A stretch of DNA of 64,000 nucleotides. Source: Tubulanus polymorphus (Eukaryota > Animalia > Nemertea). Position numbers and translations under genes: made by a program. Of the stretch, positions 1-56,786 are shown piece by piece (the stretch's first letter is position 1; each line of letters starts with the position of its first letter). Below the pieces are notes generated by a model that worked only from the letters and a program-made list of their open reading frames with translations, searched no databases and had not been told where the DNA came from. Location of the stretch: NCBI RefSeq assembly GCF_964204645.1, contig NC_134031.1, positions 13,999,807 through 14,063,806 of the forward strand, read 5' to 3'.

Positions 1-412
1 GAAAATGCAAAAACTCTCGGATTATTTACACGCGGAAAACGACCAAAAAAATTAAAAAAAACGAACATTACCGATCTTAGCCCCTTATAGTTATTTTCAA
101 AGTTAGATGTATTAATTAGGCTTTAAACAACATAAACTCCCATCAGTCGCTTGCCGGTTCAGGCTGGATGGATGATTGTTCCGACGAACCGGAACCGACA
201 TTTTCAATTATGTACTTCGATTTAAAAAAAATGATGTAACCTCGACCGACGACAACTCAACTACATTTTGTACTTCGATTTCCGATTTCAAAAACAAACC
301 CCCTGTTTCGCTCCCGGCAGGTGTGGTGGGTATGTAAGGGACGCCAAATCAAACGAAATTTAATCGCAAAAGTTTTTACAATTACCAGTCAAATAAATAA
401 GAGATTAAGATC
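1..412 (+). mobile_element. 3' UTR end of a Keno-like retrotransposon copy (continues left of the window), joined without poly(A) to U2 nt ~22
   Basis: Near-identical (a few differences) to 20644-21054; ends AATAAATAAGAGATTAAGATC and runs directly into AAAGTGTAGTATC of U2. Confidence 0.93.
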
Positions 413-575
413 AAAGTGTAGTATCTGTTCTTATCAGCTTAATATCTGATACGCTCCCCATAGGGGAGCTTCGATATTAAACTGATTTTTGGCACTAGGT
501 GAAGAGTCAGGGGCTTGCTCCGCCTTCGCCACGAGTTGGCCTGGTATTGCAGTACCTCCAGGATCGGCTCACTCC
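406..575 (+). pseudogene. RNU2: 3' part (nt ~22-190) of a U2 snRNA gene disrupted by the retrotransposon
   Basis: Identical to intact U2 copies from nt 22; the 5' end is replaced by retroelement 3' UTR. Confidence 0.9.
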
Positions 576-13012: not shown

Positions 13013-13203
13013 ATCGCTTCTCGGCCTATTGGCTAAGATCAAAGTGTAGTATCTGTTCTTATCAGCTTAATATCTGATACGCTCCCCATAGGGGAGCTTC
13101 GATATTAAACTGATTTTTGGCACTAGGTGAAGAGTCAGGGGCTTGCTCCGCCTTCGCCACGAGTTGGCCTGGTATTGCAGTACCTCCAGGATCGGCTCAC
13201 TCC
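13013..13203 (+). ncRNA. RNU2: U2 snRNA
   Basis: Identical copy. Confidence 0.98.
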
Positions 13204-14816
13204 CTCTGGGAGTTCAATATCAAATGAAGATAGTTGAGCCTAGGTCTATCCTCGCTTACCAGGTTCTGTTTGGCTCACGCCAACACGAGCTCTGTCTGTA
13301 GGCCTAAGATTTTTTTGGGTGCACGGGTGGCCGCTTAGCGGCCACCAGCGATTAGCCAATCGCACGCGTGAAAAACAACGTATCTGATTGGCTTAAATAC
13401 TTATAAATCTCTGGCGATGTAATAGGCCGATGAATGGTTTGCGGCCAGGGTTTGTGTGGGCGTGAGCTTCGGCTTCAGTTCCAGAGAAGATCTAGACCAT
13501 TAACAAACTGACCTTGACCTGGGCTCCGGCGTAATGTCGAAGTACATAATACGTAGAATATGCGTTGCGTAATTACGAATCAATGACGGAAGTTGAATTC
13601 CGTCGTCTGTCGTCGATTTATTCGCTTCATTGGACTGTGAGTATATATTTACCATCCATGAATACTTTCGATCCATCAATCATCGCCCAATCGGGATCTC
13701 CGAATCAGTTGAAATACTTTCCGTCTTAAGTTTTAGCAACCAACGCTGAATTTCACGGCAAGTCATCTTATCCGGAGGCAAAGAAATCGAAGCTAGCAAC
13801 CGCATTACTGAGTAACATAGCAACTTTTTTCGGTGATATCATAGCAACCGGTGGCATGATAAGGGTTCGAGTCCCGATTTATTGCGCTGTCATATCGGGC
13901 CACAGCGTATTCAAACCGTGTGCCTAATAAATATCGAGTATCGACCTACGTTTATCCATATACGCGAGAAAGATTCACCCTGACTGCAAACTAGTAAAGG
14001 GCCTAGAGTTGAGTAGGCTTCGCCGAGACCGGGAAGCGCGTAGCGCAGGACCCCAAAAATAGTACCTAGATCAATGGAACCAGCCACAGGTAGGGCAGTG
14101 AAACGGTAGGCTAATTCAACAAATAGGAGAGTCGACGGAAAACTGATGTATGTGCGAAATCCGTGGATCCTGAGAGGCAAATCGATGAAAAAATAGAGGA
14201 TTCCTTGGAACTATTTTGCTTAAAGTTAGAATACGGCGCCATACCAAACGTGGCAGTTCGGGGATTCCCTGCAATATCCGTACGACACCGGGGCGGTACC
14301 AATTCAAATTCAAATCATCCCGTTCCGCCTTTTTCCTTTCTAGACGACTATCATTTCAAAAGTTTGGATGGGCATGTGGAGAACGAAACTCACTTCTACG
14401 TAAAGTGAAGATGTTGGCGGCGGACAGCGAACGCATCCCGCAAATTGTGCGAACCACGTGTCGTAGCCTACCGACATCGTAGCGGTTACGCTTTTGGGTT
14501 GGTTCACTGAGCGTTTCACAAGTGTTTTTATCGCGACTAAAGTGTAGGATATTATCGATATTATGAATATTCGTAGGTAGTAGCAAATTTTCCGGGCATA
14601 ATGAAGTTCACAATTTATTTGCATAATTTTAGATCCATCGTAGTGGCTCGAAATTAATACCGGAATATATGAAATCAATTCAATTTTCATTTGAATGCCC
14701 TATCGAAAATTAAAATCATTCAAAAAGGTATAGCGCGTACATTTTTATATGTCTCACACAGTTGATGTAAATAACGGTTGTTCGACATATATATTGAATT
14801 GCGTTCATTCAACGGT

Positions 14817-14853
14817 ATCGCTTCTCGGCCTATTGGCTAAGATCAAAGTGTAG
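14817..14853 (+). pseudogene. RNU2: U2 nt 1-37 (5' part of interrupted U2 gene), including left TSD 14839-14853
   Basis: U2 sequence stops after ...AAGATCAAAGTGTAG and retroelement sequence begins. Confidence 0.95.
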
Positions 14854-14939
14854 ACGTCGTTGAATGCAGACGTGTTTGCGGCGCTCTCCAGCAATTTCAT
14901 TCATTCGATCGATATTACGAAGAATTCTTAAACCAGAAA

Positions 14940-15980
14940 ATGGATATGGAACTACAATCAGCTAAGAATTTCCGATATAACATGGATGTAGCTCAGGATC
15001 TACAGAACTTTCTGCTAGTACCGAAGATTAGAGTGCAACTTCGAAAATTGGATATGCCGGAAATTTGTGAGATTTTTGGGAACGACCCGACTTGCCGCTC
15101 CTGTATCGAAAAAGTTATCGACTTCAACTTTAACAACGTTGGCGTGTTTTGCACATCGAAAGAAACATACAAAATTTTACGAAAACACGTGATTTCATAT
15201 CGTGGCGCGTCGCTTAAATTCAGGAGTGCGACCGATACCCCCACAATCGTCAGGGTGGAGGGAATTCCGGCTAACTGCCCGCATGCAGTTGTAAACAAAG
15301 TTTTTGAACCATACGGCGAAATCGTAACCGGCTCATACCATCCGACAATCGGCAAAACTGATTTTCGAAATGGAGAAAAGAGAGTTTTGGAGATCGTTCT
15401 GAAATCCCCGATACAAAGGAACTTGACCCTCAGCAGTAAATCGTACGGTATGTTGCTTATACGGGCATACTACGCTGGACAGCCGGATCATTGTGCGATA
15501 TGCAATGATTTCGATCATACATGGGTTACATGTAGCATTTCGTGTACCCATCCAACGCACGAACCCCATAAATGCCGTCAGCTTGGGTATAGACATCGCG
15601 TCCAGCAAGCGGTGTTCAGCCAAGAGAACCCGACGCCGGCGGAGGCTCCAACAGAACAACACCAGGGACATAACCAGGAAACGGCAGCTGAACCAATTAA
15701 CTTGGTAACAGAATCGTCAACTTCAGGAGCTCGAACTGCGGTGAACGAAACAACCGACAAAAGAAAGACGTCACCCTCGGCAGCATCGAAGACCAGCACA
15801 GTTCCAGCGGGAAAGAAGAGGCCGTCTTCGCCAACAGAGCTGCCGGCGACGCCAACAAAGACGACGAAAACAGTACCCGACCAAGATGCGACCCTCGACA
15901 AACCACCTTCTGGTGAAAAAACTACGAAGAAAAAAGATGCAAACAAAGTGAAATCAAGACCGAAATCATTGAAATACTGA
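14940..15980 (+). CDS. ORF1 nucleic-acid-binding protein (RRM-like + CX2CX4HX4C zinc knuckle, low-complexity basic tail), 346 aa
   Basis: TIVRVEGIP..VFEPYGEIV RRM-like motif; CAICNDFDHTWVTC knuckle; lies upstream of ORF2. Confidence 0.9.
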   Translation: MDMELQSAKNFRYNMDVAQDLQNFLLVPKIRVQLRKLDMPEICEIFGNDPTCRSCIEKVIDFNFNNVGVFCTSKETYKILRKHVISYRGASLKFRSATDTPTIVRVEGIPANCPHAVVNKVFEPYGEIVTGSYHPTIGKTDFRNGEKRVLEIVLKSPIQRNLTLSSKSYGMLLIRAYYAGQPDHCAICNDFDHTWVTCSISCTHPTHEPHKCRQLGYRHRVQQAVFSQENPTPAEAPTEQHQGHNQETAAEPINLVTESSTSGARTAVNETTDKRKTSPSAASKTSTVPAGKKRPSSPTELPATPTKTTKTVPDQDATLDKPPSGEKTTKKKDANKVKSRPKSLKY

Positions 15981-16024
15981 GGTAATGTATACATTCTTTC
16001 AAACTTTTAAGTAGGTTTAATAAT

Positions 16025-19000
16025 ATGGCGAATAATGAGAAAATTAAATTTCTATCTTTAAACTGCAATGGTTTAGTATTTTCTAACTCTAGAACCAATG
16101 CACTTTTTGAGAAAATTAAAAACTGCGAAATTTTCCTACTTCAAGAGACTCATATATCTACTGATTTTGAACAGCATAAAATCTTTAAACCTCTTCAGAA
16201 ATATTTTGAAATCTTTTATAATATTTATGCTAATGAAAGGAAGAATGGAGTGGTCATTGGGATAAAAAGATCTTTAGATTATTCCGTCATTAAAAAGAAC
16301 AATGACAATATGGGCAGGTTAATCGCTCTCAAATTAACACTTTTTGGCAAAATTATTAGCTTGGTCAGTATTTATGCTCCAAACAAAGATCGCAACAGAA
16401 AAACTTTCTTACAAGATATAGGGAACTATTTGGATGTACAACCTAATGAAGACTTGATAATTGCGGGGGATTTTAATTGTATAGAAAGTCCATTAGATCG
16501 AGTTTCACCACTAGTTAATGTAAACATACAAAATGGCTCAGAACAATTAGCAAATTTATGTCAGCAATTTAGACTGGCAGATGCCTATAGACTTAAACAC
16601 CCTAATAGACCAGCCTTCTCCAGAATAACAAAACGAAACAATAATGTTATCAAAACCCGGATCGACCGCTTTTATGTATCGGACACTTTACAGCCAGACA
16701 TAGAGCACGTGAAACATGTCAACTCTATTCACTCCGATCACAGGATCGTCGAGTTAACAATCAACACTTCTCAAGACAAACGTGGCAAGGGATATTGGCA
16801 TCTCAATAAAGAACTACTTAAGAACCCTAATTACATCACTATGATGACAGACTTTTGGACACAATGGCAAAATCACAAACAGTTTTACGATTCGATCATA
16901 GACTGGTGGGAGGAGAGCAAAGTTCAAATAAAACAAAGATCTATGAAATTCTCTTCCGAACTCAGGAAAATTAAAAACAACCTTAAGAAATCTTTAGAGT
17001 CTCAACTATTTGTCCTTGAGAAACTTTCAGACTTAGGGATAACCGCTAATCAAAACCAAATTGACTATTTGACCAAACGTATCCGCGACTTTGAAATTGA
17101 AAACGCAAAAAGCGCTATGGTAAGATCTAAAATCGAATGGAGAGAATTTGGAGAAACAACGAGTACATTTTTCGCAAACTTTGAAAAACAACGCGCTAAA
17201 GCGAATCATATTAAGACTCTTAAAAACGACTTTGGTGAAATAAAAACCAATCAAAAAGATATTGAAAAAATTCAACTGAAATATTACAAAGATTTATATA
17301 GACGAGAGGAAACGGATCAAGATGCTCAAAATTTCTTTCTAGCTAATTTACCCCAAATTTCGGATCAGAACAAACTTCGGCACGATTCCCAAATAAACAT
17401 GGACGAATTGAATAGTTCGGTAAAGTCTTTTCAAAATAATAAATCTCCTGGAATGGATGGCATACCTATTGAGTTTTATAAAGAATTTTGGCACATTCTT
17501 CAAGATGACTTTCTACAATTAGTACATGCATGTATACAAGAAAATAGACTTTCAAAATCAATGCAGACAGGTATTATATCTTTAATCCATAAGAAAAATG
17601 ACAAAACAGATCTGAAAAATTGGAGACCGATCTCCTTATTATGTACGGATTACAAAATTTTAACAAAAGTTCTCGCAAACAGACTAATTAACTGTCTACC
17701 AGACATAATTCACCCCGACCAAACCTGTAGCGTAAAGGGCCGTCGAATTCAAGATAACTGTCATATAATTAGAGATTTAATTGACTACGTAAATCACGAC
17801 AATTTAGATGCATTTTTGGTGACAATTGATCAAATGAAAGCTTTCGATCGCGTCGACTGGCAGTATATGTTTAAAACTTTGGAATCTTTCGGCTTCGGAG
17901 AAAATCTAATTCAGTATATAAAAACTTGCTATTCGAATCCAAAATCCAAAATCAAAAGCAACGGTTTCTTAACTAAGCCATTTTCTTTAGAAAGAGGCGT
18001 TAGACAAGGGTGTCCCATGAGCGCGATACTCTATATAATAGCGGCTGAACCACTAGCAATCAAAATACGCGAAAATAACAACATTAAAGGAGTGAAATTA
18101 CCAGACGACACAGACATTAAAATCAAACAATACGCTGATGACACTACACTATGTCTAACCGACTTAGAATCATTGAATCAGGTCTTTACAACTGTGACTC
18201 TTTTTGAACGAGCATCGGGCGCAAAAATTAATATAGATAAAACTGAATGTATGTGGATTGGAGCTTGGAAAAACAGGAACGATAAGCCTTTAGACTTGAA
18301 TTGGAAACGATCTATGAAAATTTGTGGCATTCATTTCGGCAATGAAAATACGGATGATTTAAATTGGCATCACAAAATTAATAAGGTTCAAAATGTAATC
18401 AATCTTTGGCGACAAACGAAATTATCTCTGCACGGTAAAAAAGTTGTTATCAACTCATTCATATTGCCGATCTTGTGGTATACTTCTGAAGTATTTCCGA
18501 TTCCGGATAGATATATTCGAATTTTTGAGCAAAAAATTATCAATTTCTTGTGGGACTATAAAAAGCATCTCGTCGGCAAAGACATAGTACACAGGAAAAT
18601 GGAGCACGGAGGTTTAGACATACATAACATAAAATATAGACAACAAACACAGGCAATTAAGACGATAATTAGTCACGCGACAAAACCGACGCACTGGAAC
18701 CCGCTAATCAATTACAACTTGCAAAGATTTCTCGGCCCAGGCTGGAATATTCGAAACATACTTCACAATGAACTACCTAAAAAGTTAATTACTCACGACT
18801 TCTATAGACATCTACTAAAATCATGGACAGCATTTCAAAAAGACTTATTTCCTACCGAAACAATCGCGGAAATTCTACAAAAACCCATCTTCAACAATCC
18901 TGAGATTAAACTTTCCAAGACAATTAATTTCAAAGAGTATATAGACAACGGGATAACCAATCTACAACACATTTTCGATAACAGCGGTAATCTGAAACCC

Positions 19001-19837
19001 CTGCGAGAAACTCCTCTAAATGACGGATTAAAACATACAGCTATATGCAACGCGATACCGCAGCACTGGAAATTTATTCTATCAGATCAAAATCTCGATT
19101 TCGATGAACTGCCCAAAATATATGTCCAATTTGAAAATATCGACTGTGATATTGAAAAAATTGCTTCTTGTCAAATTTATAGAATTCTATTGACTAAAAA
19201 TCTGAATAATAATGTACCTATCGGGCAAACGAAAATTACTGAATTGTTGAATACCGAATTAAACTGGCCGGATATTTGGAATGAAACTTATAACAAATTC
19301 ATTGATAGGCGTTTTAGTGATATTCATTGGAAATTATTACATAATACTCTCGCGACGGCCTCAAAATTAGTACTTTGGCGAATTAAAACTGATCCTAACT
19401 GTAAAATTTGCGGACGCGCGGCTACAAATGATCACGTGGTATACTCATGCACAGAAGCGCGACAACTATATTCACACATACAGACAATTTTTGAACGCAT
19501 TATAGGAACGCCTATACGAATCACTCAAGATATCATATACACCGGTGTAACAAAAACAATGCAAAAGAATTTCCACAAACGCACGCTCGCAAACTACCTT
19601 CTATTCCTCGCACAATTTATTTTGTACAAAAATCACTACAATTTAGAACAAGGCACTGGCCGCATCAACACAATTATTTACTTCAAAAACTCTCTTATAG
19701 ATCGCTTGAACCAAGAAATAATACTTCAACGACATCTCCACATTTGGAGTCATAATGACGTCCTTATACGCCTCGATGAAAATGGACAAAGTGTAGTAAA
19801 TAAAATTGCGATTGATACTATCGACACTGTTCTCTAA
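16025..19837 (+). CDS. ORF2: AP-endonuclease + reverse transcriptase + C-terminal CCHC, 1270 aa
   Basis: LQETH, GDFN, RIDRF, SDH (APE); KSPGMDG, WRPISLL, KAFD, GVRQGCPMS, YADD (RT); CKIC..H..C. Confidence 0.97.
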   Translation: MANNEKIKFLSLNCNGLVFSNSRTNALFEKIKNCEIFLLQETHISTDFEQHKIFKPLQKYFEIFYNIYANERKNGVVIGIKRSLDYSVIKKNNDNMGRLIALKLTLFGKIISLVSIYAPNKDRNRKTFLQDIGNYLDVQPNEDLIIAGDFNCIESPLDRVSPLVNVNIQNGSEQLANLCQQFRLADAYRLKHPNRPAFSRITKRNNNVIKTRIDRFYVSDTLQPDIEHVKHVNSIHSDHRIVELTINTSQDKRGKGYWHLNKELLKNPNYITMMTDFWTQWQNHKQFYDSIIDWWEESKVQIKQRSMKFSSELRKIKNNLKKSLESQLFVLEKLSDLGITANQNQIDYLTKRIRDFEIENAKSAMVRSKIEWREFGETTSTFFANFEKQRAKANHIKTLKNDFGEIKTNQKDIEKIQLKYYKDLYRREETDQDAQNFFLANLPQISDQNKLRHDSQINMDELNSSVKSFQNNKSPGMDGIPIEFYKEFWHILQDDFLQLVHACIQENRLSKSMQTGIISLIHKKNDKTDLKNWRPISLLCTDYKILTKVLANRLINCLPDIIHPDQTCSVKGRRIQDNCHIIRDLIDYVNHDNLDAFLVTIDQMKAFDRVDWQYMFKTLESFGFGENLIQYIKTCYSNPKSKIKSNGFLTKPFSLERGVRQGCPMSAILYIIAAEPLAIKIRENNNIKGVKLPDDTDIKIKQYADDTTLCLTDLESLNQVFTTVTLFERASGAKINIDKTECMWIGAWKNRNDKPLDLNWKRSMKICGIHFGNENTDDLNWHHKINKVQNVINLWRQTKLSLHGKKVVINSFILPILWYTSEVFPIPDRYIRIFEQKIINFLWDYKKHLVGKDIVHRKMEHGGLDIHNIKYRQQTQAIKTIISHATKPTHWNPLINYNLQRFLGPGWNIRNILHNELPKKLITHDFYRHLLKSWTAFQKDLFPTETIAEILQKPIFNNPEIKLSKTINFKEYIDNGITNLQHIFDNSGNLKPLRETPLNDGLKHTAICNAIPQHWKFILSDQNLDFDELPKIYVQFENIDCDIEKIASCQIYRILLTKNLNNNVPIGQTKITELLNTELNWPDIWNETYNKFIDRRFSDIHWKLLHNTLATASKLVLWRIKTDPNCKICGRAATNDHVVYSCTEARQLYSHIQTIFERIIGTPIRITQDIIYTGVTKTMQKNFHKRTLANYLLFLAQFILYKNHYNLEQGTGRINTIIYFKNSLIDRLNQEIILQRHLHIWSHNDVLIRLDENGQSVVNKIAIDTIDTVL

Positions 19838-21077
19838 TTACGTGCCTTCATTAGTTTCGAACCTACATATCCTAAATATGACAATCGAGGTGTGTTTTGA
19901 TTTGGAATGAACAGGGATGACGGTCTATCAATGCGCATAGAACTGTCTGACCACTTTTGTTCTATATCATCACATACGCATAGTTTAATTGAGTCTGGTG
20001 TTTGGACTGTAAACTCAGCCCCATTGCCGCGATAGCTGGAAAGCTGCCTCCTTTTCGGCTTCAGGATAGCAAGCTCAGTCTATTTGCGCGCGGTGGCGGC
20101 TGGAAAGTTGCCTCTGGACATCGGTCTCATCAAAAACTAAAAAACCTGACTGTGACATTTGATTCAGCGCACTTGCCGCCTCGGTGACTCATCGACGGTC
20201 TTTCATTACGCATAGAACTGTCGGCCAGCTATTGAAGCGGCGCGTGTCTAAGATCAAAACTGTAAATAAAACCCAAAATAGACTGTATCAAATAATTGTA
20301 TGTACAAATACTCGCGTGCCTGTGTCGCTTTCCTGTTGACGGTCTATCAATGCGCATAGCACTGTCCGTTGGGCCGCGACGCATCCACGCACCTGTCTAT
20401 GCACTGTAAATAGAAACACAAAACTGCCCCCGTATGAAACTTATACTTTCAGGCAAATTCAGCACCAGACGTGAAGTACCAACTGCGCACCCCTTGACGG
20501 AGAAACCCATCCTCATTGGAGCTGCATCTTCGGATACCAGGACCGTACTCTCATCTGGATAATTTGCGTTCAAAATGTGCTACTTTAAACTAATCAACAT
20601 GCAGGGCGGACAACATAGAGGAATTTACACCAATATTTACTCGGAAAATGCAAAAACTCTCGGATTATTTACACGCGGAAAACGACCAAAAAAATAAAAA
20701 AAAACGAACATTACCGATCTTAGCCCCTTATAGTTATTTTCAAATTTAGATGTATTAATTAGGCTTTAAACAACATAAACTCCCATCAGTCGCTTGCCGG
20801 TTCAGGCTGGATGGATGATTGTTCCGACGAACCGGAACCGACATTTTCAATTATGTACTTCGATTTAAAAAAATGATGTAACCGCGACCGACGACAACTC
20901 AACTACATTTTGTACTTCGATTTCCGATTTCAAAAACAAACCCCCTGTTTCGCTCCCGGCAGGTGTGGTGGGTATGTAAGGGTCGCCAAATCAAACGAAA
21001 TTTAATCGCAAAAGTTTTTACAATTACCAGTCAAATAAATAAGAGATTAAGATCAAAAAAAAAAAAAAAAAAAAAAA

Positions 21078-21246
21078 AAGATCAAAGTGTAGTATCTGTT
21101 TTTTATCAGCTTAATATCTGATACGCTCCCCATAGGGGAGCTTCGATATTAAACTGATTTTTGGCACTAGGTGAAGAGTCAGGGGCTTGCTCCGCCTTCG
21201 CCACGAGTTGGCCTGGTATTGCAGTACCTCCAGGATCGGCTCACTC
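21078..21246 (+). pseudogene. RNU2: 3' part of the interrupted U2 gene (right TSD + nt 38-190); diverged spacer continues to about 21720
   Basis: U2 resumes after the poly(A); one C>T change; spacer homology breaks off near 21720. Confidence 0.92.
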
Positions 21247-21726
21247 CCTCTGGGAGTTCAATATCAAATAAAGATAGTTGAGCCTATGTCTATCCTCGCT
21301 TACCAGGTTCTGTTTGTCTCCCGTCGAAATGCTCACGCCAACACGAGCTCTGTCTGTAGGCCTAAGATTTTTAGAGCGCACGGGTGGCCGCTTAGCGGCC
21401 ACCTGCACTTAGCCAATAGCACGCGTGAAAAACAACCTATCTGATTGGCTTAAATACTTATAAATCTATGACAATGCAATAGGCCGATGAATGGTTTGCA
21501 GCCAGGGTTTGTGTGGGCGTGAGCTTCGGCTTTAGTTCCAGAGAAGATCTAGACCATTAACAAACTGACCTTGACCTGGGCTCCGGCGTAACGTCGAAGT
21601 ACATAATACGTAGAATATGCATATGTGTTATGCATATGTAGTGCCAATTACGAATCAATGACGGAAGTTGAATTCCGTCGTCTGTCGTCGATTTATTCTT
21701 TTCATTGGACTATGAATATATATATA

Positions 21727-23189: not shown

Positions 23190-25792
23190 TCAAGCCCACT
23201 TAGTAGTAAGGCATATGGAGATCTACTCATTCGGGCTTACTATACCGGACAGCCAGAACATTGCGCGATTTGTAATGACTTCAATCATACTTGGGTGACT
23301 TGCGATATTACGTGCACACATCCGACGCACGAACCTAATAAATGCCGACAATTGGAATATCGGCATCGTATCGAACAAGTGAGATACTGCCAGGAAAACC
23401 CGACACCAGCAGAATTCCAGGCTGATGACAGCCAGCGAGATGGGACACCACGATGTAGTTACAGATGAACCTATAAACTTGGTAACTGATTCAACATCTG
23501 ATCCTGAGGTTCATCCGACCAGACAGACGACTACTGGCAACGGAAAGACGTCCCCGTCGACAAAATCGAAGGACGGTGGGGATTCAACTTCAAAAAAGAG
23601 ACCACCATCGCCGACAGAGACACCGGCGACACCGACGAAGACCAACTAAGACGTCGAGAAAAGCATCGGAAAGAGACGAGAGTGTCGACAAATCACCAGT
23701 GTGTAAGGAAAAACATCCTCCGAACGAAGCGAAGAAAAGAGACAACAACAAAGCGAACCCTAAACCGAAACCATCGAAATACTAGGTGACGTATTCATTC
23801 CTTCAAATATTTTGTGCAGGCTAAATCTAAAATGGCGAATAATGAGAAGATTAGATTTTTATCGTTAAATTGCAACGGATTGGTATTTTCAAATTCTAAA
23901 ACCAATGCGCTCTTTGAGAAAATTAAAAACTGTGATATTTTCCTACTTCAAGAAACCCATATCTCGACTGACTTTGAACAGCATAAAATCTTTAGACCTT
24001 TTCAGAAAAATTTTGAAATTTTGTATTATATTTGTGCCAATGACAGGAAAAATGGGGTCGTAATTGGAATCGAAAGATCTTTAGATTATTCCATCATGAA
24101 TAAGAACAATGACAATATGGGCAGGTTAATCACTCTTAAGTTAACACTATTCGGCAAAACTATCAGCATTGTCAGCATCAATGCTCCAACAAAGATCGCA
24201 GCAGAAAAATATTTTTATAAGATTTAGGGAACTATTTGGATGTACACTTGTGAAGACTTGACAATTGCGGGGGATTTTAATTGTATAGAGAGTCCATTAG
24301 AACGAGTTTCGCCACTAGTTAATGTAAACATAATAAACGGCTCAGAACAATTAGCAAATTTATGTCAGCAATTTAGACTGTCAGATGCCTACTGACTTAA
24401 ACACCATAATAAACCAGCTTTCTCAGGAATAACAAAACGAAACAATAATGTTATCAAAACCAGAATAGACCGCTTTTATGTATCGGACAGTTTACAGCAA
24501 GACATAGAGCACGTCAAACATGTCAACTCCATTCACTCCGATCACAGAATCGTCGAGTTAACAATCAACACTTCTCAAGACAAACGTGGCAAGGGATATT
24601 GGCATCTCAACAAAGAACTTCTTAAAAACCCTAATTACATCACTATGATAACAGACTTTTGGACACAATGGCAAAATCACAAACAGTTTTATGACTCGAT
24701 CATTGATTGGTGGGAAGTGGGTAAAATCCAAATAAAACAAAGATCTATGAAATTCTCTTCAGAACTCAGGAAAGTTAAAGACAACCTTAAGAAATCTTTA
24801 CAGTCTCAACTATTTGCCCTTGAGAAACTTTCTGACTTAGGAGTTACCAGTAATCAAAACCAAATTGATTATTTGACCAAACGTATCCGCGATTTTGAAA
24901 TTAAAAACGCAAAAAGCGCTATGATAATGATAATATGATCTAAAATCGAATGGAGAGAATTTGGAGAAACAACGAGTACATATTTCGCAAAAACAACGCG
25001 CTAAAGCGAATCATATTAAGACTCTTAAAAATGACTTGGGTGAAAATAAAACCGGTCAAAAAGATATTGGAAAAAGTTCAACGGAAATATTACAAAGATT
25101 TATATAGACGAGAGGAAACGGATCAAGAAGCTCAAAGTTTCTTCCTAGCTAATTTACCCCAAATTTCGGATCAGAATAAATTTAGGCAAGATTCCCAAAT
25201 AAACATGGACGAATTGAATAGTTCGGTAAAGTCTTTTCAAAATAATAAATCTCCTGGTATCGATGGCATACCTATTGAATTTTATTAAGAATTTTGGCAC
25301 ATTCTCCAAGATGACTTTCTACAATTAGTACAGGCGTGTAAACAAGAAAATAGACTTTCTAAATCAATGCAGACAGGTATTATATCATTAATTCATAAGA
25401 AAAATGACAAAACGGATCTGAAAAATTGGAGACCGATCTCCTTATTATGTACAGATTACAAAATTTTCACAAAAGTTCTCGCAAACCGACTAATTAACTG
25501 TCTACCAGACATAATGGTTCAGGCTGGATGGATGATTGTTCCGATGTTCCGGAACCGACATTTCCAATTATGTACTTCGATTTAAAAAATTATGTAACCT
25601 CGACCGACGACAACTCAACTACATTTTGTACTTCGATTTCCGATTTCAAAATCAAATTCCTGCTTCGTCCTCGGCAGGTGTGGTGGGTATGAAAGGGACA
25701 CCAAATCAAACGAAATTTAATCGCAAAAGTTTTAACAATTACCAGTCAAATAAATAAGTGATTAAGATTAAAAAAAACAAAAACAAAAACAA
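23190..25792 (+). mobile_element. Degenerate Keno-like copy 2 (5'-truncated ORF1, broken ORF2, ~3-kb internal deletion, degenerate A-tail)
   Basis: Homology to intact ORF1/ORF2; jumps to the 3'-UTR end at ~25515; tail A8(CA5)n followed by AAGATCAAAGTGTAG. Confidence 0.9.
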
Positions 25793-25807
25793 AAGATCAA
25801 AGTGTAG

Positions 25808-27492
<1,685 letters not shown>

Positions 27493-44232: not shown

Positions 44233-45170
44233 GTCGTAGATTTTAACTTCAACACTGTTGGAACAGTTTAAAATCTTTAAAAAAGCACGAAGTTCCGCAT
44301 CGTGGTTCGGTTCTTTAATTCAGGAGCGCAAAGGAAACACCGACCATAGTCAGAGTTGAAGGAATACCTGCGAACTGCCCACATGCAGTCGTTAACAAGG
44401 TATTTGAAACGTATGGAGAAATTATTACAGGTTCATATCACCCGACAATCGGGAAAACAAACTTTCGAAACGGGGAAAAACACGTTCTGGAGATTGTCCG
44501 CAAATCTCCGAAAGCAAGAAACATGACCTTGTCCAGCAAAGCTTATGGATTGTTGCTAATTAGAGCCTACTATACAGGACAGCCAGAACATTGTGCGATC
44601 TGCAATGATTTCAACCACACGTGGGTAACTTGTGCTATTTCGTGTACCCATCCAACGCACGAACCGCATAGATGCCGACAGTTAGAGTATAGGCATCGTA
44701 TTCAACAGCTACAATACAGCCAGCAGAACCCAACACCAGCAGAAGTGCCGACTGGTAACACACCACACCACCGACACCACCAGGAAGCTGCGGAAGATGC
44801 TGGTGAACCAATCAACCTGGCTACAGATTTGTCGTCCGTTCCTGAGGTTCACCCGACGGAGCAGATAATAACCAACAGCAGGAAAACGCCTCCGCCGACA
44901 ACATCCACCGGTACGGCTTCAAAGACGACGAAGAGACCTTCATCGCCGACAGAACCCCCGGCGACACCGACCAAGACGTCAAGAAAGACAGTTGAAGAAG
45001 AAACGAGTGTCGAGAAACCTGTGATCAAGGAAAAAGCTCCACCGAATGAAACGAAAAAGAGAGAAAACAACAGGGTGAATCCGAAACAAAAACCATACTA
45101 GGTAATGTATACCTTCCCCCAAACATTTGTTTAATTTAACATGGCGAATAACGAGAAAATTAGATTTTTT
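44233..45170 (+). pseudogene. Continuation of Keno-like copy 3: rest of ORF1 and first codons of ORF2
   Basis: LLIRAYYTGQPEHCAICNDFNHTWVTC; MANNEKIRF at 45141, then truncated. Confidence 0.88.
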
Positions 45171-55201: not shown

Positions 55202-55775
55202 TGGAGAGAATTTGGAGAAACAACAAGTACATTTTTCGCAAACTTTGAAAAACAACGCGCAAAAGCGAATCATATTAAGACTCTTAAAAACGACTTTGGT
55301 AAAATAAAAACCAATCAAAAAGATATTGAAAAAATTCAACTGAAATATTACAAACATTTATATAGACGAGAGGAAACGGATCAAGATGCTCAAAATTTCT
55401 TCCTAGCTAATTTACCCCAAATTTCGGATCAGAATAAACTTCGGCACGATTCCAAAATAAACATGGACGAATTGAATTGTTCGGTAAAATCTTTTCAAAA
55501 TAATAAATCTCCTGGAATGGATGGCATACCTATTGAGTTTTATAAAGAATTTTGGCACATTCTCCTAGATGACTTTCTACAATTAGTACATGCATGTATA
55601 CAAGAAAATAGACGTTCAAAATCAATGCAGAGAGGTTTTATATCTTTAATCGATTTCCGATTTCATAATCAAACCCCCTTTTTCGTTCCCGGGTATGTAA
55701 GCGTAACCAAATCAAACTAAATTTAATCGCAAAAGTTTTAACAATTACCAGTCAAATAAATAAGAGATTAAGATC
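55202..55775 (+). mobile_element. Keno-like ORF2 fragment fused by deletion to the 3' terminus; tail-less junction to U2
   Basis: High similarity to 17138-17588, then 3'-UTR end, then TAAGATCAAAGTGCAG. Confidence 0.88.
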
Positions 55776-56786
55776 AAAGTGCAGCATCTGTTCTCATCAG
55801 CTTAATATCTGATACGCTCCCCATAGGGGAGCTTCGATATTAAACTGATTTTTTGTACTAACTGAAGATTCAGGGGCTTGCTCCACCTTCGCCACGAGTT
55901 GGCCTGGTATTGCAGTACCTCAAGGATCGGCTCACTCCCTCTGGAGTTCAATGTCAAATAAAGATAGTTGAGCCTATGTCTATCCTCGCTTACCAGGTTT
56001 TGTTTGTCTCCCGCCGCAATGCTCACGCCAACACGAGCTCTGTCTGTAGGCCCAAGATTTTTTGGGCGCACGAGTGGCCGCTCTGCGGCCACCTGCACTT
56101 AGCCAATCGCACGCGTGAAAAACAACGTAGGATCTCCGAATCAGTTGTAATACTTTCCGTCTTAAGTTTTAGCAACCAACTCTGGATTTCACGGCAAGTC
56201 ATCTATCCGGAGGCAAAGAAATCGAAGCTAGCAACCGCGTTACTGAGTAAAATAGCAACTTTTTCGGTGATATCATAGCAACCGGTGGCACGATAAGTGT
56301 TCGAATCCCGATTCATTGCGCTGTCATATCGGGCCACAGCGTGTTCAAACCGTGTGCCTAATAGATATCGAGTATCGACCTACGTTTATCCATAAGATTC
56401 ACCCTGACTGCAAACTAGTAAACGGTACCAATTCAAATTCAAATTATTCCGCTCCGCCTTTATCCTTTCTAGACTATCATTTCAAAAGTTTGGATGGGCA
56501 TGTGGAGAACGAAACTCACTTCTACGTGAAGTGAAGATGTTGGCGGGGGACAGCGATCGCATCCCGCAACTGCGAACCACGTGTCGTAGCCTATCGACAT
56601 CGTAGCGGTAACGCTTTTGGGTTGGTTCACTGAGTGTTTCACATGTGTTTTTATCGCGACTAAAGTGTATGTTATTATCGATATTATGAATATTAGTAGC
56701 AAATTTTCCGGGAATAATGAAGTTCACATTTTATTTGCAAAAATTTAGATCCATCGTAGTGGCTCGAAATTAATACCGGAATATAT
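55769..56786 (+). pseudogene. RNU2: Orphan degenerate U2 gene (55769-~55938) with internally deleted spacer
   Basis: U2 with substitutions, including branch-site GTGCAGCA; spacer homologous with two ~300-bp deletions. Confidence 0.9.

Follow-up and report, generated by a model that had tools for sequence, protein, structure and literature searches.

A target-matching 3′ tail and a cluster of U2-like words in a LINE inserted into U2 snRNA genes of Tubulanus polymorphus

A LINE that interrupts a U2 snRNA gene in the 64,000-nucleotide stretch of DNA analysed here (the window) ends, just before its poly(A), in a short tail that matches the U2 target. As read from the insertion junctions, this tail on balance probably base-pairs with the nicked target to start reverse transcription, in either a poly(A) mode or a tail mode. 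Site-specific LINEs are already known to use tails that match their target; the unusual feature of this element is the clustering of several matches on U2 nt 19–39, and not any single word among them. Shuffles and a simulation of neutral divergence confirm that the cluster is non-random (P ~1e-3 to 1e-5).

The element and its U2 array

The element, family A, is a young, low-copy, two-ORF LINE with APE and RT, Tx1-like in type. Its parts and the other copies in the window are as follows, U2 being numbered on the intact copy at 13013–13205:

14817–14853, + strand: 5′ part (nt 1–37) of the interrupted U2 snRNA gene, the 5′ flank of the insertion
14841–14853, + strand: 5′ copy of the target-site duplication (TSD), the last 13 nt of that flank
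14854–21079, + strand: full-length family A LINE (short 5′ UTR, ORF1, ORF2, 3′ UTR, A25)
14940–15980, + strand: ORF1, a separate ORF of 346 aa
16025–19837, + strand: ORF2
19838–21054, + strand: 3′ UTR
20915–20985, + strand: best-conserved module of the 3′ UTR
21034–21039, + strand: AATAAA signal (a direct reading), 15 nt 5′ of the C-A where the tail stops and the poly(A) begins
21047–21054, + strand: RNA-encoded 3′ tail TTAAGATC, the terminal word
21048–21057, + strand: terminal word as matched to U2, TAAGATCAAA, exactly nt 22–31
21055–21079, + strand: run of 25 A
21080–21249, + strand: 3′ copy of the TSD (21080–21092), then the rest of the interrupted U2 gene
1–415, + strand: 3′ part of a 5′-truncated family A copy with a seamless U2 junction and no poly(A)
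23226–25807, + strand: internally deleted sister copy (84–92% identity), whose tail TTAAGATT and A-rich stretch are followed by the U2 duplication (25795–25807)
55202–55778, + strand: deleted family A copy joined seamlessly to a degenerate U2 gene

The layout is that of the Tx1 clade, with two ORFs and an ORF2 that carries an N-terminal APE, an RT and a C-terminal zinc knuckle (Pfam: Exo_endo_phos at residues 10–239, RVT_1 at 522–770, zf-RVT at 1080–1148); the Pfam search of ORF1 gave no domain match. The TSD of the full-length copy (TSDs were assigned by hand) is GATCAAAGTGTAG, corresponding to U2 nt 25–37, or to nt 23–37 if the A run is counted; the bottom strand is nicked at about nt 22/23, the top strand at 37/38. 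All four U2 insertions sit in a single array, which thus holds 4 of the roughly 8–9 clear family-A-type tails found, and stacking and tandem insertion at the U2 site are real in this array: the 5′ end of another element follows in tandem, from 25808, directly after the sister copy, and the copy at 1–415 has its own 5′ end upstream of the window, where it adjoins a different LINE.

The tail and its target

The tail stands before the poly(A) in the full-length copy (21047–21079), in the sister copy (25762–25794) and in some 20 dispersed copies of two sister families, B and C. U2 nt 22–31 are reproduced by TAAGATC plus A, and the identity begins at the nick (nt 22/23), not before it; unique sequence contributes only 21048–21054 of the terminal word, the last three A of which open the run of 25. 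Two of the four U2 insertions are seamless and without poly(A) (junctions at 405–416 and 55768–55778). In these copies the junction runs across nt 22–31, and in the poly(A)-bearing U2 copies the 3′ flank starts at nt 23–25. Outside U2, family A tails occur in at least five copies (L035, L036, L038, L045 and L067); at three of these insertions the TSD overlaps the tail by 6–8 nt (TAAGATCAC at L036, TTAAGAGAAA at L035 and TAAAGATCCCGA at L067), and at L038 only GA is held in common with the tail. Family A sites have little in common upstream of the nick, their similarity lying on the primer side over 2–10 nt; the nick motif GYT^AA is common to families A, B and C. The priming role that the initial annotation had proposed for the terminal word is thus backed by junction anatomy, that is by the seamless half of the U2 copies and the three tail-overlapping TSDs elsewhere, and the same anatomy supports a putative annealing of tail to primer as described for R1Bm and SART1Bm; as expected of LINEs of that type, the RNA 3′ end of family A equals the primer-side target, and the end of the element overlaps the TSD. 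Two other patterns were set aside: a recurrent 16-mer resembling the 5′ junction (CAAAGTATCGACGTCG) belongs to an unrelated repeat, as do 14 loci that fit the tail-upstream pattern with three mismatches.

In the mechanism proposed here, the endonuclease would have a loose nick motif on the bottom strand, YT^AA/AG, which in U2 is GGCT^AAG, cut between nt 22 and 23, and the family A RNA would carry UUAAGAUC at its end, ahead of the poly(A). The 3′ end thereby released on the bottom strand (...TTTGATCTT) may then pair with the poly(A), leaving junctions that keep it; alternatively, the primer may slide six letters in and pair with the tail AAGAUCAAA, leaving seamless junctions. U2 would be hit repeatedly because its nt 23–31 are a perfect 9-nt match to the tail right after a good nick motif. 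Since the last letters of a seamless daughter are target DNA, identity of tail and target from the nick onward may moreover be self-reinforcing.

Recognition by protein of a TAAGATC-like DNA motif would yield identical junctions, and an unlikely alternative is that protein alone chooses the site, be it through the endonuclease, another ORF2 domain or a cue of promoter position, while priming with short overlap or without a seam passively copies target letters into the tail. That tail-to-U2 identity begins exactly at the nick and that one nick motif serves families A, B and C are both in line with such imprinting. So is family D, a LINE 35% identical in ORF2 that ends in a plain poly(A) tail and uses the same U2 nick as family A; site choice therefore does not depend on the tail, and position or endonuclease specificity can pick the U2 site without tail homology. 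However, the primer-side similarity of family A sites (2–10 nt) is what annealing predicts, and the sister families argue that the tail is not a passive imprint. Families B and C are dispersed outside U2 and carry the same tail, which is thus ancestral; at insertions of B (L010, L012) and of C (L083, L086), poly(A) served for priming, at T^AA sites without a tail-like target, and since these families keep the tail at many non-U2 sites despite such priming, it is inherited through the RNA and not rewritten at each insertion. Taken with family D, this makes the tail neither a U2-specific adaptation nor necessary for picking the site.

Beyond the tail itself, the likeness of the B/C tail to U2 over nt 13–31 is marginal (P 0.02–0.05). 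The module at 20915–20985 is 85–91% identical to families B and C, against 76–79% overall, and is extremely abundant in DNA contigs; it is a candidate RT-recognition module common to other repeats. The stretch was present in no RNA run, and the read contigs obtained were all of DNA. The closest ORF2 homologue from another species is 37% identical, so that UTRs are not comparable across species, and the contig of the P0001 relative ends in poly(A) without a flank. The second-best homologue (33% identity) is located in a 5S rRNA gene; Tx1-clade elements sit in 5S rRNA genes.

Words matching U2 inside the element

Besides the terminal word, three internal words match U2, and one of them has a predicted pairing partner:

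19787–19798, + strand: word 1, CAAAGTGTAGTA, exactly U2 nt 28–39, in ORF2 codons 1255–1258 (Q S V V)
20248–20258, + strand: word 2, CTAAGATCAAA, exactly U2 nt 21–31
20716–20725, + strand: antisense word, GATCTTAGCC, the reverse complement of U2 nt 19–28
20158–20164, + strand: segment predicted to pair with the 3′ half of word 2 (probability ~0.7)

The three sense words had been claimed as copies of U2 and are exact at every position; the antisense word is a newly found fourth match. Together the four cover U2 nt 19–39, that is the duplicated segment plus 2–4 nt per side. TCGGCC and TATTG do precede word 2 (20221–20226 and 20230–20234) and AATAAA does follow it (20265–20270), as had been reported; this is one of three such signals, located at 19799, 20265 and 21034. 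An extended likeness to U2 upstream of the word was not recovered by local alignment (best 13/14, nt 18–31), and this upstream region is partly inherited from an internal repeat unit.

Chance was modelled in two ways. In dinucleotide shuffles compared with U2 nt 15–45, sense matches of at least 10 nt averaged 0.018 per 1.27 kb against 3 observed, a count reached in 0/5000 shuffles; over the whole 6.2-kb element the shuffle mean was 0.11 against the same 3, and for matches of at least 11 nt it was 0.003–0.004 per 1.3 kb against 2 observed. The significance of three words in the last 1.27 kb thus survives the shuffle check proposed in the initial annotation, whose own estimate for each word, a few percent or less, proves about right or conservative. 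In simulated neutral divergence from sister-family sequences, counting internal 10-mers on either strand, P was ~0.05 for at least one, ~1e-3 for at least two and <=5e-5 for at least three. Comparison with the whole of U2 returned one unrelated 11-mer in ORF1 (15355–15365 = U2 nt 95–105), so single words of such length do arise by chance.

The history of the internal words differs from that of the tail. Word 1 is specific to family A, relatives matching it at 8/12 letters; its codons are collinear with those of families B and C, with no indel, and the contig of a sister variant carries G19796A within it, one change in 12 nt against 11/179 in the background, about the same rate. Word 2 is likewise specific to family A and can equally be read as the tail plus A, copied over 11 nt; in a genome search it was covered by only three identical copies, the next relatives being 71–72% identical there, and three family A copies covering the internal words are too few to measure constraint. 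The antisense word has its first six letters conserved in the sister families. Among the controls, namely families D, B and C and the 5S rRNA-targeting relative, none has internal target words, and the recurrence of words 1 and 2 in relatives, to which the initial annotation had looked, is absent. The 3′ UTR of family A holds three copies of an internal repeat unit. The unit with word 2 runs on past the word (CTGTAAATA... is common to the next unit), so that small changes made in place set word 2 apart from its paralogue TGTCTATGCA; a segment of ~100 nt containing it is missing from family C. The notion that the RNA carries three working copies of its target does not stand as it was put: the matches are there, with the terminal word being the ordinary tail, word 2 a duplicate of the tail, and word 1 unsupported by the only variant available.

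All RNA structures considered are predictions. Pairing of the tail with the antisense word has a predicted probability of 0.81 in family A, and a homologous tail helix is predicted at 0.7–0.95 in four of seven B/C copies, which suggests that the core of the antisense word is a conserved pairing partner of the tail. The predicted helix between 20158–20164 and word 2 includes one base pair that covaries when families A and B are compared. In fold energy the region does no better than shuffles (z = -0.63), and the predicted accessibility of the words is only average. Under tail priming, the antisense word would be mainly an intramolecular partner of the tail, and word 2 a second tail-like motif able to vie with the tail for it. 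For word 1, coincidence within the lineage is the most likely account, and a role as auxiliary annealing site the most that might be claimed; the neutral simulation, in which three lineage-specific internal words are very unlikely, makes coincidence uncomfortable.

In a decidedly unlikely explanation, the tail and words 1 and 2 (sense, nt 21–39) together with the antisense word (nt 19–28) would hold both strands of the staggered cut (nt 23–37) and so supplement a loose endonuclease with recognition by RNA. All four words do fall on U2 nt 19–39, the internal ones are limited to the U2-associated lineage, and three such words have P <=5e-5 under neutral divergence; word 1 and the bottom-strand flap are predicted to form a duplex of -18.5 kcal/mol, and internal target-like motifs in the 3′ UTR of SART1Bm can start reverse transcription (PMC7265360, citing Anzai 2005). 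Against this, family D reaches the same nick although it has none of the words, word 1 is mutated in the sister variant at about the background rate, word 2 is as much tail-like as target-like, the antisense core is an ancestral partner of the tail, and accessibility is predicted to be average. Nor does the assembly contain priming products of the internal words, either word 2 joined to U2 or U2 following word 1; hits on C33 and C9 belong to an unrelated repeat, and at C6:951377 a 5′ fragment of U2 runs into unrelated sequence. The specific arrangement in which dispersed RNA guides (tail, tail-like copy, ORF2 12-mer and antisense word) pair both strands of the 15-bp staggered U2 cut is given little credence.

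The initial annotation's other suggestion, that the internal words are fossil 3′ ends of a stepwise-lengthened element, is highly improbable, as is a variant of it in which they are scars of fused, stacked partial insertions: real stacking at the U2 site, the three repeat units and the word 2 segment missing from family C speak for such an origin, but word 1 lies in collinear ORF2 codons, the repeat unit of word 2 extends past the word, the 1.2-kb UTR architecture is older than the A/B/C split, and no older relatives ending at word 1 or word 2 were found in the assembly.

Relation to known elements and significance

The U2-specific LINEs Keno, of the Tx1 clade, and Utopia lie, like family A, in tandem U2 snRNA genes, in sense orientation and within the conserved 5′ region; Keno shares the APE+RT type of ORF2, Utopia being of the RLE type, and tandem insertions such as those around family A have been reported for Utopia (PMC4640811, PMC4494074). 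However, in both of these U2 nt 39 opens the 3′ flank (PMC4640811), whereas that of family A starts at nt 23–25 or is seamless across nt 22–31, with only its top-strand break at 37/38, and family A, with its copies elsewhere, is not strictly U2-specific. The Keno affiliation first assumed is thus not borne out by the site. In R1Bm and SART1Bm, target-specific APE LINEs of Bombyx mori, annealing between the nicked bottom strand and target-like sequence at or near the RNA 3′ end is believed to fix where reverse transcription starts (PMC7265360); their motifs are of 3–4 nt or come from read-through target sequence, in comparison with a tail of 7 nt plus A and internal words of 10–12 nt in family A, which has one of its matches inside ORF2. 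Human L1 has a similarly loose TT^AA-type nick at T-tracts, and pairing of the primer 3′ end with the RNA 3′ end decides productive priming (PMC3649969); L1 pairs only with poly(A), whereas family A would also pair with its unique tail, giving poly(A)-free junctions and a bias to tail-like sites. In R2, too, a template that carries downstream target sequence can pair there with the primer, but R2Bm requires no such pairing, its protein reading the DNA site (PMC11194090), and R2 is 28S-specific with an RLE endonuclease in place of the APE of family A.

The site at about nt 22/23 is a second landing site for retrotransposons in U2, distinct from that of Keno and Utopia and common to at least two unrelated LINE families. 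If guidance by several RNA segments were true, part of the target choice would be programmed by RNA and could in principle be reprogrammed, a property not known to have been demonstrated for an APE-type LINE. If pairing of the tail biases where the element lands, the family offers a natural set of seamless U2 junctions, poly(A)-bearing U2 junctions and tail-like non-U2 junctions; these three types bear on the respective shares of RNA and protein in the site choice of LINEs, a matter of consequence for current efforts at targeted insertion with LINE machinery.

U2 array, family A and its relatives

U2 snRNA genes are arrayed in tandem in the window, with a unit of 1804 bp; here Rfam recovers seven U2 matches at an equal 187 bits and one at 147.5 bits. 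A 6.2-kb element (14854-21079) interrupts one unit behind U2 nt 37. It is the two-ORF, APE-type Tx1-like LINE that defines family A; its target-site duplication is GATCAAAGTGTAG (U2 nt 25-37, or nt 23-37 counting two A within the poly(A)). Family A is young and rare: three further copies lie inside U2 genes within the window, and the rest of the 268-Mb assembly holds one 98% copy, which lies on a small contig, along with a few short fragments.

Array and family-A features in the window
1-415, family-A copy, 5'-truncated, in a U2 gene
14854-21079, family-A element, comprising:
ORF1, 346 aa, no match in a Pfam search
ORF2, 1270 aa, APE endonuclease, reverse transcriptase and C-terminal zf-RVT domains
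3' UTR, 1.2 kb, terminating in 25 A
21074-21249, weaker U2 copy (Rfam)
23226-25772, sister copy, internally deleted, in a U2 gene, with another element's 5' end next to it in tandem
55202-55778, family-A copy, deleted, in a U2 gene
55745-55940, weaker U2 copy (Rfam)

At 25773-25830, the A-rich tail of the sister copy is followed by a U2 duplication and by the 5' end of the second element (AGACGTCG...), a head-to-tail tandem; an (ACAG)n-like run comes after that 5' end. The stretch 44270-45167 does not lie in a U2 gene; at 69% identity to the element's ORF1 part, it is what remains of a more distant relative. The 3' UTR also contains a 70-nt module (20915-20985) at a contig depth of ~2e5 in DNA runs; many DNA contigs depart from it after ~20982 into A-rich ends, and a SINE or LINE family that is very abundant in the T. 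polymorphus genome probably shares the module.

The dispersed sister families B and C are far larger than family A, to which they are 79% and 76% identical, respectively, over the last 1.4 kb; their flanks differ in every copy and none lies in U2. Outside the T. polymorphus genome, the best ORF2 match reaches 37% identity. The second-best homologue (L062:5080-5200, public metagenome assembly; 33%) has its end, a short run of A, within a 5S rRNA gene and appears to be a 5S-targeting relative. Small RNA genes are common targets in the Tx1 group (PMC4494074), and a relative in a 5S rRNA gene would fit the membership of family A in this group.

While Keno and Utopia insertions are followed by U2 from nt 39 (PMC4640811), this position being the start of their 3' flank, only the top-strand break of family A falls there; by site, family A is thus not Keno, to whose relatives the initial annotation refers. 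A solitary U2 5' fragment elsewhere (L064; G000:C6:951250-951520, minus strand) runs to ~nt 39 and then into unrelated sequence; it may represent another element's 5' junction, at a Keno-like position. All families share a loose top-strand nick motif, G-Y-T^A-A, whose U2 version is GGCT^AAG. Both readable family-C insertions (L083, L086) have the identical target context CGGTT^AAC with duplications of 14-16 bp, which hints at a sharper nick motif in that family.

Target-like words within the element

Words matching the U2 target
19787-19798, sense, word 1, U2 nt 28-39
20248-20258, sense, word 2, U2 nt 21-31
20716-20725, antisense word, GATCTTAGCC, reverse complement of U2 nt 19-28
21048-21057, sense, terminal word, U2 nt 22-31

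The three sense words, already reported in the initial annotation, are exact U2 matches at these coordinates, and the same word scan finds the antisense one. In dinucleotide-preserving shuffles scored for sense matches of at least 10 nt to U2 nt 15-45, the mean is 0.018 for the last 1.27 kb and 0.11 for the whole element, against three observed. Neutral in-silico evolution of sister-family sequences to 12% or 22% divergence produces one internal 10-mer (either strand) in ~5% of runs, two in ~0.1% and three in at most 1/20,000. Neither base composition nor ancestral partial matches thus explain the cluster, which is real and statistically unusual. Comparison with the whole of U2 also yields an A/T-rich ORF1 11-mer, AAACTGATTTT (15355-15365; U2 nt 95-105), distant from the target site; it is taken as a chance match, showing that isolated words can arise by chance.

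Word 1 consists of four ORF2 codons, 13 codons upstream of the stop; its counterparts are CTAAATACAGTA in family B and CTGAACGTAGTA or CTGAATGCAGTA in family C, without indels, and the A lineage completed the match to U2 through two non-synonymous changes. There is nothing here to indicate constraint: a sister variant in same-species DNA contigs has 11 differences over 179 nt, and the one inside the word (G19796A) is the background rate. As the predicted duplex with the bottom-strand flap is strong (-18.5 kcal/mol), a role as auxiliary anchor is conceivable; coincidence is the leading reading.

Word 2 lies in a ~100-nt segment, present in families A and B and absent from C, that is a copy of a UTR internal repeat unit. 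Given the homologous letters in B (TTTTTGATCATGC) and in the paralogous unit of A (TGTCTATGCA), it formed in place via small changes. The repeat unit extends beyond the word, which is therefore not a former element end; the suggestion that the internal words are fossil 3' ends is thus not supported, word 1 likewise showing no indels. Over its 11 nt, word 2 equals the tail (the RNA-encoded 3' end before the poly(A), 21047-21054) plus A, and the match to U2 is equally good. For its 3' half, folding predicts a partner at 20158-64, and one pair covaries between A and B (A-U vs U-A). All three genomic copies of the region are identical over 181 nt, the next relatives being 71-72% identical.

The first six letters of the antisense word (GATCTT) are kept in B and C, and the next four (AGCC) occur only in A. 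Partition-function folding predicts that 20716-23 pairs with the tail at 21047-54 with a probability of 0.81 in family A; of seven B and C copies, four show the homologous helix at 0.7-0.95. The fold energy of the region is no better than that of shuffles. Given this conservation and the predicted helix, the antisense word is most readily taken as an intramolecular partner of the tail, from whose resemblance to U2 its own largely derives. Word 2 could compete with the tail for this partner (-10.7 vs -12.6 kcal/mol). On this reading, the antisense word is one of a small network of motifs, tail and anti-tail, and so, probably, is word 2.

Extra annealing sites are an improbable role for the words: the assembly contains no word 2-U2 junction and no case of a U2 5' part following word 1; the other LINE at the U2 site, the 5S-targeting relative and families B and C have no internal words that match their own targets; and the words are predicted to be of average accessibility. 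A slim chance is retained because, by the simulation, the internal words are unlikely to have all arisen through neutral change alone.

The tail and priming

The tail TTAAGATC directly precedes the poly(A) in the 14854-21079 copy, in the sister copy and in ~20 B and C copies; since the latter lie at unrelated loci, it is encoded in the RNA and predates the U2-associated lineage. The C-A at its end has an AATAAA 15 nt upstream. Two of the four U2 insertions lack poly(A) and the tail continues directly into U2 (...TTAAGATCAAAGTGTAG...), as pairing of the nicked bottom strand with RNA AAGAUCAAA would predict. The clearest sequence evidence on the role of the tail comes from the four family-A insertions outside U2 with both junctions readable.

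Target-site duplications of family-A insertions outside U2
L036, TAAGATCAC, begins with tail letters
L035, TTAAGAGAAA, begins with tail letters
L067, TAAAGATCCCGA, begins with tail letters
L038, GACTGGCTGGTAT, overlaps the tail by GA only

In three of the four, tail and duplication overlap by 6-8 nt, far beyond chance. In two B and two C copies, priming was on poly(A), at T^AA sites whose target is not tail-like. In the favoured reading, the nick is made by a loose endonuclease, and pairing of primer and tail would then give preference to sites that continue like the tail, as U2 nt 23-31 does perfectly. In seamless events, the target DNA would supply the daughter's last letters, so that identity from the nick onward would be self-maintaining.

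A different Tx1-like LINE lies immediately upstream of window position 1 (L003:1-1496). Over the last 340 aa of ORF2, the C-terminal third, it is 35% identical to family A; its terminal run of ~45 A is followed by GATCAAAG and then the truncated family-A copy, so that one U2 nick carries a stack of two unrelated LINE families. As this LINE used the same nick without tail homology, the tail is not necessary for the choice of the U2 site, for which protein recognition of a TAAGATC-like motif is possible.

The RNA priming envisaged in the initial annotation is supported by the junctions for the terminal word, which is the family's ordinary tail. Tail-type priming is already known from R1Bm and SART1Bm (PMC7265360) and, with poly(A), from L1 (PMC3649969); a known priming mechanism is here seen in a new U2 site variant.
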